Shown here: positions 23,997 to 35,712 of the stretch, in pieces
Layout: every line of letters begins with the position of its first letter
Numbering within the stretch: position 1 is the first letter of the stretch
Notes under the pieces: generated by a model
Told to the model about the DNA's origin: nothing
Databases searched by the model: none
What the model saw: the letters and a program-made list of their open reading frames with translations, nothing else
Sequence record: ON529853.1
Strand: one strand, 5' to 3'
DNA: 64,000 bases
Translations under genes and position numbers: made by a program

Positions 23997-24153
23997 TCAC
24001 AAGGGCGTCGGTCGCAAGGCCGGCGCCCTTCGCCGCTGCGACCGGCTCGCGTTAACCTTAACAGGGCGTTAACCTTAACAACCCTGCCCGCTCTAGGGGT
24101 ATGACCGGGTAGGGCCAGGTATGACCGGGTCATACCGGGGCGGATTCCCGCTG

Positions 24154-24238
24154 AAAATCACCCAAATTCGCCGAATTTCGCCCAAAATCGCCGGATTTTG
24201 ACCTTAAATCACTGTTTTTACTCGATTTTTCAGGTTTT
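24154..24238. other. 10-bp-phased A/T tracts (predicted curved DNA)
   Basis: Nine consecutive tracts one helical turn apart. Confidence 0.75.
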
Positions 24239-24254
24239 CAGGCGGTTCAGCGGC

Positions 24255-24410
24255 CGTTAACCTTAACAGGGCGTTAACCTTAACGCTGGAATGGTTAACG
24301 GGGCGTTAACCTTAACGCGGGGATGGTTAACGCGGTGTTAACCTTAACGCGGGGATGGTTAACGGGCCGTTTACCTTAACGCCGGGAGGGTTAACGCCCC
24401 CAGGGTTAAT
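24255..24410. repeat. Dense tandem array of TTAA half-sites and 12-mers (~32-bp unit)
   Basis: GTTAACCTTAAC-GCGGGGATG-GTTAAC units. Confidence 0.9.
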
Positions 24411-24415
24411 CCGGG

Positions 24416-24660
24416 GCGCGTCAAATCGGGCGCGCGTCAAATTCGGCCGGCGTCAAATCGAAACGGCGTCAAGTCAGGTCGGGCGCGTTGAAGCGCGCTC
24501 GCGTCAAATCCAGATCGCGTCAAATTCGCGGGGCGTCAAATCGCGCTCCCGTCAAATCGGCCGCGCGTCAAATTCGCAGGGCGTCAAATCGGCCGCGCGT
24601 CAAATCGGCGGGGCGTCAAGTCGACCAGGCGGCGTTGAAGCGCGCCGACGTCAAGTCGGG
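24416..24660. repeat. Repeat family A, right copy: ~14 CGTCAA(A/G)T(T)C units
   Basis: Shares identical 22-mer GCGTCAAATCGAAACGGCGTCA (24450) with left copy (5145). Confidence 0.9.
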
Positions 24661-24857: not shown

Positions 24858-25306
24858 GAGTCACGAAATCCATCCACGGGCCGGAAAACCAGGCCCTGCG
24901 GGCGATCGTCAGTCACGATACCTATGAACGATGACTCTGCCTGGATTTTTGTCAGTCACGAAACCCGGAGGCGGGCTTCGCCGGCGATCCTGGCGCCCAG
25001 GCGGATCAGTGTCAGCGGTTGTGTCAATGCGGGACACAATAAGGCGGGATTAGGGCGAAATGGGATTTCAGGGCGGAGTCACGTTCCCCGGAATCGGGGC
25101 TCGGGGCTTCTGTTGATTTCATTGAGGTTTTTCTGGAAATCGCCGCGAAACGGAGTCACGAAGTCCGTTGTGCAGTGCAGCATTGCGGGCGTTTCGGCCG
25201 GGTCCAGACGGGGCGAAACGGAGTCACGTTTTCCTAAGCCGTTGGGATCATTACGCTTTTCCGACAGGGTCAGCACCTGAGTCACGTTTGACACGAACGA
25301 TGACTC
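24858..25306. repeat. Repeat family B, right copy: (G)AGTCACG half-sites and dyads
   Basis: 24858, 24911(+24929), 24954, 25076, 25153, 25221, 25279(+25298). Confidence 0.85.
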
Positions 25307-25569: not shown

Positions 25570-25602
25570 TTCGCGCTCTCCAGCCCCCTGGGAAAACACC
25601 CA

Positions 25603-25808
25603 GGGTCCCTGACGGAAAAATTCGGATGGGTCCCCGGTCAGGAATTCGCCAGGGTCCCTGGACGAAGAATTCCGAAGGGTCCCCGGCGGGAAAATTCGCC
25701 AGGGTCCCTCGACCAGAAAATCCCGATGGGTCCCCGCCCGGATTATCGCCAGGGTCCCTGGGCGAAGAATTCCGAAGGGTCCCCGGCCCGAAAATCCGGA
25801 AGGGTCCC
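25603..25808. repeat. Repeat family C, right copy: nine GGGTCCC cores at 24-26 bp period
   Basis: Cores at 25603,25628,25652,25677,25702,25728,25752,25777,25802. Confidence 0.95.
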
Positions 25809-26110
25809 CGCAGGCTACCACGCGGCGGCCGGCGCCGCCATGGGCGCCCGGCGTTAACCTTAATGGGGCGTTAACCATGCCTGTTAAGGTTAACGCCGGG
25901 GCAGGCCGCGTTAACCCTTTGATCGTTAAGGTTAACGCCGGCCGAAACTGGCGCGAGATCGTTGACAGGCGACTCAGACGGGGTGTCGCGCTTATGTCAC
26001 AGTTGAGTGGCGCCTTTGACTGTCAACGAATCGCGTCTGGAAATCGCTTCCAGCGGAGCCCCGGTTTTGGACCTCTTCCTGGCCTTTCCTGGATCATATC
26101 CCAACATCCA

Positions 26111-32739: not shown

Positions 32740-33077
32740 GAGGCGGGAGAACTCGGCAGACCCCGGAGGTGGGTTCTGTTACGAGGCCGATTTCTTACAT
32801 AATTTCCGCCGTCTGTCAAGATTTACGGCAGTCAGAGTCAGCCTTAACGGCAATCGACCCTGCAAGCAAGGGGTTTGTCGATCGCGCACGCTGACGACCG
32901 GCGAGACCACCGCGAAGGCGGCGACCAGGGATTTACGAGCCCTGAGGAACAATTCTGAATTGTTGGACTCTGAGGACCAATTACCCTCTCTCCTTACCCC
33001 CCATACTGCAAGTTTGGGATATTATTAATGAAAGAGAAAGAAAGAGAGGAAGCGACTTTAGCCTCGTCATTCTCTAT

Positions 33078-33367
33078 CATTAAACGTATCCCAAAATGGT
33101 AATAGAAGAGATAGGGGGTAGGGCAGGGCAGTTTAGCCCTTGGTGTTCGTTTCCATTAAACGTATCCCATAATCGTAGTAGTAGTGGTAAGGGGTAGGGC
33201 AGGGTCTCTCAGGCTATGGTGTTCGTTTCCATTAAACGTATCCCATAAACGCTGTAGCAGCGGTAGGGGGTAGGGCCTATGTGTTCGTTTCCTTTAAAAC
33301 TATCCCAAAATAACGGTGGATACTGGTGTGTGGTGGGCTTCCATACTTAGCCTTTAAAACTAACCCA
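33078..33367. repeat. Iteron-like repeats C(A/T)TTAAA(C/A)...TATCCCA in an AT-rich segment
   Basis: Cores at 33078, 33154, 33230 (76-bp period), 33292, 33352. Confidence 0.85.
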
Positions 33368-33458
33368 ACATTTCCCTGGTGTATCCAAGGGACCTCCAGG
33401 CAGCAAAAAGCCCCAGGCGGCGAACCTGGGGCCTTGAGTCGGACCACCGTCTGGAGGT

Positions 33459-34655
33459 CTAAGACATGCGCGCTTCCCGGTAGGCTTCGATCTCCGACAT
33501 GCGCATCGCGTCGGGCGTTTCCCGGTTCGGTCGCAGCTTCTCCCCACGGAAGTCGAGCATGAGGACGCCTCGGCTCGCCATCACCGGGTCGATCCCCAGT
33601 TCGCGGGCCAGTGTCTCATAGAAGCTGACCGGCGCCCAGCAGTGGATGTTGATGCCGCAGCCGATCTCGGGGCTCTCGAACCGGTCCAGCAGGTCCAGCA
33701 GCAGCGACAGGCCTTCACGGCTGTTGCGCCGATCCTCGCGGAAGTCCGCCACCTGGTCGGTCGTGGCCCCCTGCTCCAGCATGGCGTCGACCTTGGCCTG
33801 GGTCTCGCCGGCGAACCAGTCGTGGGTCTCGCGCTTGATCGCCTGTTGCTGCATCAGGGCGTAGAGGGCGGCGGCGACCTTCGGCTTGCGCACGAAGTCC
33901 TCACGCTTGATCCCCATGGAGCGCCGCGCCGCATTATAGACCGCCCCCACCTGGACGAAGAAGTCGTCACGCGCCGCCGACTGCTTCTTCTCGTTGCCGC
34001 CCAGTTCGGCGACGGTCATCTTGACCATCAGGCCGCCGAAATAGCCCCGCAGGGTCATCTGGTTCAGTTCGTCCTGGGGCAGGTTGTAGAGGCCGATGCG
34101 CAGCAGGTCCTGGCGGATCACCTCGCTCTCGCGCAGCAGCTTCTTGATCTGGGCGTAGCCGGTGGTGTCGCGGGGATCGTAGGCGGTGCGCAGCGCGTTG
34201 TCTTCGGCGGTGTCGGTGCCGTAGCGGCGGCGCGTGGCCTGCTTGCGCACCTGGGTGAAGTCCTCGCCGGCCGGGCGCAGCCCGTGGTCGTCCATGATCT
34301 CGGCGAAGGTGGCGAAACCACCGCGTTTACGGATGGAGTCCAGGATCGACTGCTCGATCTGATCGGCCATGCCCAGCCCCTTGCGGTGGAAACCACCGCT
34401 GACGGTGTAAGCGCCGCGCCGGCCCTCGATCCGCGTGAGCGCGCCGGACTTCCACATGTTGATCAGGGTCTGCGACACCACCTTGCGCCCGGCCGGCGTA
34501 TCCCATTCCTCGCCGAGGAACGGCAGCACGTCCAGCGCACCACCGCCCTCCTCCATCCGGCTCAGCGCGTCAGCGATCGCGCGCTTGAAGACGTTCTGGG
34601 TCACGGGCTTGCCGTGGAGGGTCTTTTCGAGGTTGTCGGAGCCGGAGGTGCGCAT
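33459..34655 (-). CDS. putative DNA-binding protein with winged-helix-like N-terminal regions
   Basis: VVSQTLINMWKSGALTRIEGRRGAYTV and ILDSIRKRGGFATFAEIM patterns; stand-alone gene. Confidence 0.5.
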   Translation of the reverse strand: MRTSGSDNLEKTLHGKPVTQNVFKRAIADALSRMEEGGGALDVLPFLGEEWDTPAGRKVVSQTLINMWKSGALTRIEGRRGAYTVSGGFHRKGLGMADQIEQSILDSIRKRGGFATFAEIMDDHGLRPAGEDFTQVRKQATRRRYGTDTAEDNALRTAYDPRDTTGYAQIKKLLRESEVIRQDLLRIGLYNLPQDELNQMTLRGYFGGLMVKMTVAELGGNEKKQSAARDDFFVQVGAVYNAARRSMGIKREDFVRKPKVAAALYALMQQQAIKRETHDWFAGETQAKVDAMLEQGATTDQVADFREDRRNSREGLSLLLDLLDRFESPEIGCGINIHCWAPVSFYETLARELGIDPVMASRGVLMLDFRGEKLRPNRETPDAMRMSEIEAYREARMS

Positions 34656-34684
34656 ATAAATAGCCTCTATGAATCGCCGTCATG

Positions 34685-34710
34685 TTAACCATGCTGACAT
34701 TCAATGTCAA
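34685..34710 (-). promoter_or_regulatory. sigma70-like promoter overlapped by palindrome TGACAT-TCA-ATGTCA and a TTAACCAT CtrA half-site
   Basis: TTGACA at 34705-34710 (minus); palindrome 34695-34709; TTAACCAT 34685-34692. Confidence 0.6.
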
Positions 34711-34782
34711 GATTATGGGATATAAATAATGTCGCGTAATGGAAAAATAGGCGAAATCCGCCAGACCACCGCCCGAAACGAC

Positions 34783-34830
34783 ATCACTCGTGCGCTTCGC
34801 GCCCTCGTGCCTGCCTCCGGCAGCCCTCCT
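34783..34830 (+). repeat. Twin-hairpin element, copy A
   Basis: ATCACTCGT-GCGC-TTC-GCGC...CTGCC-TCC-GGCAG. Confidence 0.8.
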
Positions 34831-35130
34831 TCGGAACTCCCTGCGGTCGCTACTGCGTGAACCTGTTTCGGTCCAGACCAGACAAGGCCTGGCACGGCTG
34901 GATCGGTTGGATCGGTTGGATTGGTCCCTGCGGGCTCATTCGGTCAAGGCCTGGCACGGCTGGATCGGTTGCTGCGGGCTGTTTCGCTTAAGGATTGGCA
35001 CGGCTGGATCGGCTCTCCGGTCAACACCAGGCATAGCTGGATCGCTGCAACGTCTGGTCGGCTCCACAGCTTCACAGCATGACAACCTTCGGACCTCCAC
35101 GACGGGACGGCCGAACCGAGTCCAGGGCTT

Positions 35131-35180
35131 CCGGAGGACGGCTGGCGAAGCCAGTCACGAGGGGGCGAAGCCCACGAGTG
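35131..35180 (-). repeat. Twin-hairpin element, copy B (inverted)
   Basis: CACTCGT-GGGC-TTC-GCCC...CTGGC-TTC-GCCAG on minus strand. Confidence 0.8.
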
Positions 35181-35450
35181 GAGCACTGTCATTTTTCACG
35201 GCGGTGGTTGACAGCACCACCGGCAGTCCGTAGACAACCTGGGCCGGGAGCGTTCTGCTCAGTCCGTGACCGGCTCTGGAAGAGAAGAGCGGCCGGCCCC
35301 TCCCGTACGAGGATGCTGGTCGCTCCGATCTCGCGGGATCAGGCTTTCCTGAACTTTCCTGAAATGTATCCCAACATTCCGAAGGGGTCCCGCAGGACCA
35401 CCGCCGTGTAGAATGCAGGACCACCGCCCGCATAATGCGCCAGGTCGAGC

Positions 35451-35548
35451 ATCACTCCTGCGCTTCGCGCCGTCGTGCCCGGCTCCGCCGGCCGCACCTC
35501 CGGTCGCCCTATAGGATAAGGCCCGGCACTCGAACGCAGGTCGAGCCG
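35451..35548 (+). repeat. Twin-hairpin element, copy C
   Basis: About 100 bp near-identical to copy D. Confidence 0.85.
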
Positions 35549-35712
35549 GCCGCAACGTCAACACGGTGCCCGACAAGGCTCGGCACAGCCGTGTGATTGC
35601 TTGGACTTTCCTGAAATCTATCCCAAAAAATCGCAACAGCCTTCACGGTCAAACCAATTTTCAACCGACTCGGGCTCACGCCGGCCTTGTCCTGGAGGGG
35701 CCTAGTCGGCCC

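Follow-up and report, generated by a model that had tools for sequence, protein, structure and literature searches.

The plasmid replicons mini-P1 (oriR-repA-incA) and F (oriS-repE-incC) share a layout in which a stand-alone gene for a DNA-binding protein is flanked on both sides by that protein's own sites, one of them at the gene's promoter, and in which direct repeats adjoin the least stable DNA. Phage lambda likewise encodes its own origin binder, O, which uses four to five repeated sites beside an AT-rich stretch before a host or phage helicase is recruited, and oriV, the origin of the plasmid RSF1010 (IncQ), combines repeats with an AT-rich stretch and has GC-rich hairpins on each strand, all inside ~2.5 kilobases (kb). 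The primary origin of phage T7, at which promoters precede an AT-rich region and a transcript serves as primer, requires neither an origin-binding protein nor a repeat array. Here we describe a locus that combines several of these features: a gene for a 398-amino-acid (398-aa) DNA-binding protein, BAMBUS_00550, and the TATCCCA-type sites around it, in a 64,000-nucleotide stretch of DNA (hereafter the window) that corresponds to positions 1–64000 of record ON529853.1, the 348,100-base-pair (bp) genome of the Brevundimonas jumbo phage vB_BpoS-Bambus (hereafter Bambus). Bambus belongs to the Dolichocephalovirinae, and its host is B. pondensis.

The best-known relatives, phiCbK and its kin, have long been used as model phages of Caulobacter. 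The phiCbK genome paper reports a T7-like polymerase and a helicase that lacks a primase domain, and does not name an origin (PMC3556154), and no replication origin or initiator is described for phiCbK and its relatives (PMC3556154). Dolichocephalovirinae were shown in 2025 to persist as episomes, and an origin was postulated to explain this persistence (PMC12195562). We propose, with a probability of roughly 40%, that BAMBUS_00550 and its sites are the phage's own origin, with a phage-specific origin-binding protein and iteron-like sites. We rank this reading first because the locus has the architecture of an iteron replicon such as mini-P1 or F, and because no origin is known in these phages.

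The original prediction had placed five TATCCCA-type repeats at 33078–33367 and further copies at 33015, 34716, 35367 and 35619, and all of them were found at those positions. TATCCCA starts at 33087, 33163, 33239 and 33301 on the plus strand, followed there by a degenerate fifth copy, TAACCCA, at 33361; the copies at 33015 and 34716 are on the minus strand and those at 35367 and 35619 on the plus strand. Counted on both strands (TATCCCA/TGGGATA), 13 copies lie in the window, where 2.3 would be expected and 0 of 100 shuffles reached 13, and nine of the 21 copies in the 348-kb genome fall inside 2.6 kb (33015–35625). The actual repeat unit is longer, ~24 nucleotides (nt), and reads TTTCC-W-TTAAA-NN-TATCCCA-W-AAT. 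A 29-nt weight matrix found nine sites scoring 30–43 bits in the genome, all of them at 33.0–35.6 kb (Table 1); the next-best scores were at 26081, directly 3′ of terL (22.6 bits), and at 79780 (19.1 bits). These two weaker copies outside the locus (26081–26109 and genome 79780–79808) have a TTTCCTG-N6-TATCCCAACA variant of the motif. The word TGGGATAC also occurs inside the gene at 34499–34505, in the codons of an invariant EWDT, and is kept in four of six relatives; this copy may be a coding coincidence.

The five direct sites form an intergenic array between the terminator of the 398-aa gene and the promoter of the next operon, with start-to-start distances of 76, 76, 62 and 60 bp. The site at 33087, the outermost of the five, and the inverted site that closes the array bracket an A/T- and purine-rich spacer of ~60 bp, which contains the AT minimum (33010–33110). 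The array had been described as lying in the most AT-rich part of the window, and the result was broader: whether windows of 100, 200 or 400 bp are taken, the AT-richest one genome-wide lies in the array, with GC contents of 0.34, 0.41 and 0.45 against a genome mean of 0.66. The second AT-richest 100 bp of the Bambus genome is the promoter of the 398-aa gene.

We compared the AT extremes in five complete genomes of 207–348 kb (Bambus, phiCbK, Colossus, Kikimora and Bajun). In all five, the AT-richest 100 and 200 bp genome-wide lie 47–371 bp 3′ of the homologous gene, at a GC content of 0.26–0.34 compared with 0.62–0.66 overall. For 400-bp windows the locus ranks first in four of the genomes and second in Bajun. 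A cluster of sites unique to the locus thus adjoins the least stable DNA of the genome, which is one of the features of iteron-type origins.

The arrangement of the sites is conserved among close relatives. The segment 32800–35700 is 100% identical to the vB_BpoS-Bambus record ON529853.1, 96% identical to Marchewka and ~81% identical to Domovoi, Papperlapapp and Kabachok, and an alignment of the gap 3′ of the gene from four phages (alignment A2) shows conserved motif cores and diverged spacers. Mapping of the sites in six phages or contigs, with proteins 64–100% identical, gave the same grid in each: five direct TGGG(A/T)TA sites at about +84, +140, +210, +280 and +365 from the stop codon. In five of them the inverted site follows at about +417 to +438; in the sixth, L085, it lies at +550 and the array is interrupted by an N gap. 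All six have an inverted site 65–67 bp before the start codon, adjoining TTGACA in the same orientation, and one or two direct sites 0.7–1.1 kb upstream. The flank of the TGGGATA core varies among sub-lineages.

Homologues of the 398-aa gene are also present in more distant phages, including Kikimora and Gurke (42% identity), CcrPW and CcrColossus gp440 (28–29%), Bajun (27%) and CcrBL9. The gene order is the same in every lineage: the gene, its terminator, a non-coding gap of 0.5–1 kb, a gene for a protein of ~190 aa, a RuvC/RNaseH-like gene, terS and terL. The repeats in the gap differ by lineage, so that the more distant phages have other repeats in the same place. Two 57–60-nt units spaced by 77–78 bp occur in Colossus and PW, units spaced by 76 bp in Bajun and two units spaced by ~76 bp in phiCbK, a period of ~76–78 bp that thus recurs in four phages. 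The Kikimora gap contains three 69-nt units and a second type of repeat, and contig L086 (47% identity) has a different 20-mer, arranged in inverted pairs. Two of these lineages also carry their own motif on both sides of the gene: a Kikimora 12-mer has three copies genome-wide, two in the gap and one at the gene's promoter, and a TCTCGACCA word of Colossus and PW is common to the downstream gap repeats and the region upstream of the gene. Together with Bambus, three lineages therefore have three different motifs, each found both downstream of the gene and at its promoter or upstream of it, which is the pattern expected of a cognate protein–site pair. Judging from this co-variation, the repeats are probably the cognate sites of the 398-aa protein family.

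The public records of Kikimora and Gurke start within the block of repeats that lies 3′ of the gene, as we saw directly for Kikimora. We considered whether these record starts mark a physical end of the genome and rejected this, an assembly break being the simplest explanation. Metagenomic contigs of three distant family members (L088–L090, 2–5 kb) stop 135–155 bp past the gene, which fits repeat-induced assembly breaks. Tandem repeats probably break assemblies here, so public records may understate the copy numbers.

BAMBUS_00550 is annotated as hypothetical in the record. Its product had been predicted to be winged-helix-like, and an AlphaFold2 model (mean predicted local distance difference test, pLDDT, of 83) together with structure comparison confirmed this fold for residues 15–93. 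This domain is a canonical winged helix (VIA matches to TtgV, IclR, MarR and IdeR at Z 9.6–10.0), aligning at a root-mean-square deviation (rmsd) of 1.9–2.1 Å over 67–69 residues. Residues ~96–197 probably form a second winged helix in the model, with a match to ETS at Z 7.8 and matches of residues 19–198 to tandem winged-helix proteins at Z ~8 and an rmsd of 9 Å. The C-terminal half, folded alone (pLDDT 72), matched solely XRE/lambda-repressor-type helix-turn-helix (HTH) proteins, at Z up to 7; these matches are consistent, lie below the level trusted for helical domains and suggest a weak XRE-HTH likeness of the modelled helical domain.

By sequence, the protein matched phrog_10876, a family of unknown function (E 5e-43), and aligned to phiCbK gp311 in hhalign with a probability of 99.7%; this homology extends over the full length and places it in the phrog_10876/gp311 family. 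The family has 121 representatives among 1.8 billion proteins, nearly all of 300–430 aa and without added domains. Searches for known initiators covered Rep_3 and the phage O family in Pfam, and RepE, pi and RepA in the Protein Data Bank (PDB). Pfam and NCBIfam gave no curated match to the 398-aa protein, with winged-helix noise below threshold only, and a Pfam scan of this protein and 11 family members found no Rep family at E up to 1. Neither phmmer nor a profile search matched the PDB sequences at E up to 10, and tblastn against 72,556 plasmids matched nothing. Foldseek with the whole model gave no match at E up to 0.001, its best hits being multi-winged-helix proteins (RPC62, MukF), and the ESM Atlas returned small winged-helix clusters under 0.85 only. 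No Rep chain was among the top 50 of Foldseek or VIA, and the 398-aa protein has an extra domain of ~200 aa. We found no features of Rep, O, DnaA, a primase, a helicase or an ATPase in it.

The promoter of the gene had been predicted to carry a palindrome and a half-site for CtrA. The palindrome, TGACATT-N-AATGTCA at 34694–34708, overlaps the −35 hexamer and the spacer, and the inverted repeat is kept in relatives. As for CtrA, a GTTAAC half-site is indeed present at 34684–34689, and it is one of 448 TTAAC words genome-wide; the full TTAA-N7-TTAA box, of which the genome has 74, is absent from the locus. The TATCCCA-type site that abuts the −35 hexamer is a candidate autoregulatory site.

These results firmly establish a conserved, locus-specific module in which probable sites bracket the gene for a multi-domain DNA-binding protein and the main array coincides with the genome's least stable DNA. 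We infer the binding of the protein to the sites and every step that would follow from it. The original prediction of an initiator and iterons resembling a plasmid origin is supported by the winged helix, the locus-specific array on both flanks and the conserved AT extreme; membership in an initiator family, a ~22-bp spacing, origin-specific hairpins or a GC-skew signal do not add to this support.

Among the described systems, mini-P1 and F are closest to Bambus, which shares with them the stand-alone gene for a DNA-binding protein, the repeated sites on both flanks with one at the gene's own promoter, the direct repeats adjoining the least stable DNA and, probably, tandem winged helices. The 398-aa protein differs in that it matches neither Rep_3 nor RepA nor RepE by sequence or fold, and in its extra helical C-terminal domain, and the locus differs in its site spacing of 60–76 bp rather than ~21–22 bp and its lack of DnaA boxes. 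Compared with lambda, the phage-encoded, here putative, origin binder, the number of sites and the AT-rich stretch are alike. The lambda sites, however, are inverted repeats ~20 bp apart inside the O gene, the 398-aa protein gave no Phage_rep_O match, and neither a P-like helicase loader nor a DnaB-type helicase was found in Bambus (its genome gave no DnaB_C match). With T7, Bambus has in common a T7-like DNA polymerase, encoded at 233 kb of its genome, an AT-rich island beside promoters and a terminator, and the lack of a recognised primase.

If the locus is an origin, a host-type promoter would drive expression of the 398-aa protein, with its two winged helices and one more helical domain that may be an HTH, and the protein would limit its own synthesis via the site abutting the −35 hexamer. 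Directly 3′ of its gene, it would load on all five direct sites as well as the inverted one at the end, and the resulting nucleoprotein complex would destabilise the A/T- and purine-rich DNA between and beside the sites. The opened DNA could then be passed to the phage helicase and the T7-like polymerase, host functions or a transcript could supply the primers, and the two upstream sites might form pairs with the array in the manner of handcuffing or looping. A bolder version is that the gp311 family is a novel class of phage initiators (two winged helices plus an XRE-like domain), unrelated to Rep, O or DnaA, which opens an origin of widely spaced (60–76 bp) composite sites, that this single module drives both lytic replication and plasmid-like episomal pseudolysogeny in jumbo phages of the phiCbK type, and that a small RNA and the upstream sites provide copy control; we regard this version as rather unlikely.

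Several observations weigh against an origin. The 398-aa protein has no sequence, profile or fold link to known initiators in Pfam, the PDB or the structure searches, and each of its recognisable domains fits an ordinary transcription factor. The sites, with a motif of ~24 nt, are 60–76 bp apart and not ~21–22 bp, as classical tandem iterons (about 17–22 bp long) are. The AT-richness of the Bambus group is mostly in the sites themselves (GC 0.35–0.42), the spacers having a GC content of 0.54–0.58; in Bambus the site windows have 0.35 and the spacers 0.56, with the ~60-bp A/T-rich spacer as the exception. The module adjoins the packaging operon, ~150 kb or more from the polymerase gene. The sites of a DnaA-dependent origin such as Caulobacter Cori are absent from the locus: it has neither a DnaA box TTATNCACA, even when one mismatch is allowed, nor a full CtrA box or an IHF consensus. 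We considered TATCCCA itself as a DnaA box and rejected it, since conserved positions of TTATCCACA are changed in it. The locus shows no enrichment of GANTC sites.

Cumulative GC skew, suggested as a check along with the original prediction, gives no origin signal here and marks no origin in the five genomes. The detrended maximum in Bambus does fall at 33337. In all five genomes, however, the sign of the skew follows gene orientation, the coding strand being C-rich, and we therefore judged the skew uninformative. The other genomes have no skew extreme at the locus except for the raw maximum of Kikimora, which lies in the gap because the record starts there.

Finally, a repeat-dense non-coding region 3′ of terL (24.0–26.1 kb) is a rival candidate for an origin or a packaging site. 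It contains GTTAACCTTAAC / TTAA-N7-TTAA CtrA-type boxes at 24040–24410 and 25850–25940, ~13 copies of a 16-nt GCGTCAAATCG unit at 24408–24623, seven GGAGTCACG words at 24860–25290 and a 25/49-nt GGGTCCC array at 25600–25810. By analogy with phiCbK, in which the repeat starts at terL codon 652, this region would lie in the terminal repeat, and clusters of CtrA boxes there have been published (PMC9437464).

The strongest alternative is that the 398-aa protein is an autoregulated transcription factor and the array, lying between the early-type gene and the packaging operon, an operator, enhancer or insulator that times or shields this operon, with no role in replication. Such a regulatory or insulator role is tentative too, and comes close behind an origin because the protein belongs to no initiator family, the spacing is atypical and the domains resemble those of transcription factors. 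Winged-helix and XRE-like domains are typical of regulators, one site abuts the −35 hexamer of the gene itself, the array lies 200–600 bp upstream of the next operon's promoter, the synteny of gene, array and packaging operon is conserved from Bambus to phiCbK, and the AT-richness is, as noted, largely a property of the sites. An array of five to six sites 60–76 bp apart that ends ~200 bp from a sigma-70-type promoter would nevertheless be unusual for activation or repression, and the distance between array and promoter ranges from 60 to 260 bp among lineages. Transcriptional control also leaves unexplained why the AT extreme of every tested genome lies here and why two sites lie 0.7–1 kb upstream.

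The module could instead maintain the episomal (pseudolysogenic) state, with the sites as a centromere-like or copy-control array (cf. incA, parC, tubC) and the protein tethering or pairing phage genomes instead of melting DNA. TubR-type centromere binders are winged-helix proteins. Direct-repeat arrays beside an autoregulated gene for a DNA-binding protein are typical of centromeres, including those of the ParR-parC and TubR-tubC systems, and Dolichocephalovirinae do persist as episomes (PMC12195562). Unlike those systems, Bambus has no motor or partition NTPase next to the gene, whose neighbours encode small unknown proteins without a family match, and the 398-aa protein is much larger than its counterparts there. 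The Bambus genome gave no match to AAA_31 (ParA) or ParB_N; ParM and TubZ were not searched for. We consider a maintenance element improbable. Least probable of all is a packaging-related site, either pac-like or organising concatemer processing for the adjacent terminase. In favour of such a site, the module lies 3.6 kb upstream of terS-terL in every lineage, a weaker TATCCCA-type site lies directly 3′ of terL at 26081 and a motif at 35374–35400 resembles units of the repeat array at 25.6–25.8 kb. Against it, the phage has its own TerS, and the physical end of phiCbK-like phages was mapped inside terL codon 652, several kb away (PMC3556154).

The original prediction had further compared the locus to plasmid origins with ssiA/ssiB, the hairpins of RSF1010 oriV, reading three hairpin elements on opposite strands as bidirectional priming sites. 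All three are present and are twin hairpins; their CACGAG...GAGTG flanks are conserved, and 5 of 16 pairs show compensatory changes (Table 1). BLAST revealed nine copies of this element genome-wide, spanning 34–176 kb. Such a dispersed family indicates a general element of these phages and not an origin-specific priming pair. Searches of the Bambus genome with the Toprim_2 and Prim-Pol models found no primase, including none like RepB′. The resemblance to RSF1010 in repeats, AT-rich stretch and hairpins thus lacks support as an analogy, because the Bambus hairpins are dispersed, with eight of nine on one strand and mostly at gene ends, and a primase was not recognised. The eight minus-strand copies keep that orientation regardless of the local direction of genes, two of them lying between plus-strand genes. 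Their neighbours include gcrA, which is followed by a copy, and a tRNA-Arg gene, and a CGGTGGTC box often comes after the hairpins. In relatives, too, twin hairpins accompany the homologous gene.

The remaining non-coding elements lie on either side of the module. Downstream, the next operon encodes a 191-aa protein, a RuvC-like resolvase, TerS and TerL. Upstream, the GGCACGGCTGGATCGG core of the tandem repeats is also found upstream of the gene in L087. A 150-nt block that is identical in four phages has two strong stem-loops (z −2.0 to −2.6 on the plus strand), the second of which is kept via compensatory changes, as judged by eye, relative to the 75%-identical L087. This block is a candidate small RNA or other single-strand element, antisense to the direction of the 398-aa gene; a scan of 32.5–36.1 kb against Rfam, with E values up to 1 admitted, found nothing.

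The word GACCACCG, which reads CGGTGGTC on the gene strand, occurs at 32905, 33442, 34764, 35396 and 35419 and has 71 copies genome-wide. It is 14-fold enriched in the two gaps, where it always has one orientation and stands twice directly before a terminator hairpin. Kikimora, Bajun and phiCbK, too, have many copies of it at their homologous loci. Short contigs from three wastewater runs labelled 'RNA-Seq cDNA', which are probably DNA, contained exact pieces of the locus at 33429–33587, 34765–34873, 34880–34968 and 35181–35328. Almost none of these pieces fell on the repeat array, and they are informative neither for transcription nor for ends.

Table 1. Features of the BAMBUS_00550 locus and related elements (positions in ON529853.1, which in the window are the same).
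Feature	Position	Strand	Remarks
−35 hexamer (AATCTTGACA class) of the downstream operon	32814..32819	-	same promoter word in relatives
17-bp palindrome between array and next operon	32948..32964		conserved in A2; similar one in L087
AT-richest 400 bp of the 348-kb genome	32978..33378		GC 0.45
Distal inverted site	33009..33037	-	41.6 bits; closes the array
Array of five direct TATCCCA-type sites	33071..33373	+	TGGG(A/T)TA on the gene-sense strand; directly 3′ of the 398-aa gene
Intrinsic terminator of the 398-aa gene	33403..33433	-	GC hairpin, then T run; invariant in alignment A2
Gene for the 398-aa DNA-binding protein, BAMBUS_00550	33459..34655	-	homologue of phiCbK gp311 and CcrColossus gp440
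Promoter of the 398-aa gene	34682..34710	-	TTGACA-17-TAACAT; 10/12 positions match
TATCCCA-type site abutting the −35 hexamer	34710..34738	-	29.9 bits; 65–67 bp before the start codon
Twin hairpin H1	34785..34840	-	followed by CGGTGGTC box and small terminator
Tandem repeats of ~26–44 nt, GGCACGGCTGGATCGG core	34883..35048	+	copy number varies among relatives
Twin hairpin H2	35125..35180	+	sole plus-strand copy of the family
Block identical in four phages	35211..35345	+	promoter-like TTGACA-17-TAGACA, then two strong stem-loops
Upstream TATCCCA-type site, TTTCCTGAAAT-N-TATCCCAAC variant	35351..35379	+	34.5 bits; invariant in alignment A3; at −720 to −890 in relatives
Twin hairpin H3	35450..35510	-	member of the dispersed family
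Second upstream TATCCCA-type site	35603..35631	+	35.1 bits; conserved in alignment A3
Other twin-hairpin copies	42934, 52131, 76908, 87669, 134074, 175692	-	mostly directly after genes

The module offers a precise, conserved target of ~3 kb that is present in phiCbK as well, as gp311 and the 643-bp gap that follows. As a regulator, it would define a switch before the packaging operon of these phages. As an origin, it would add a family of initiators whose sites have an unusual geometry, and it could give a replicon for GC-rich Alphaproteobacteria.

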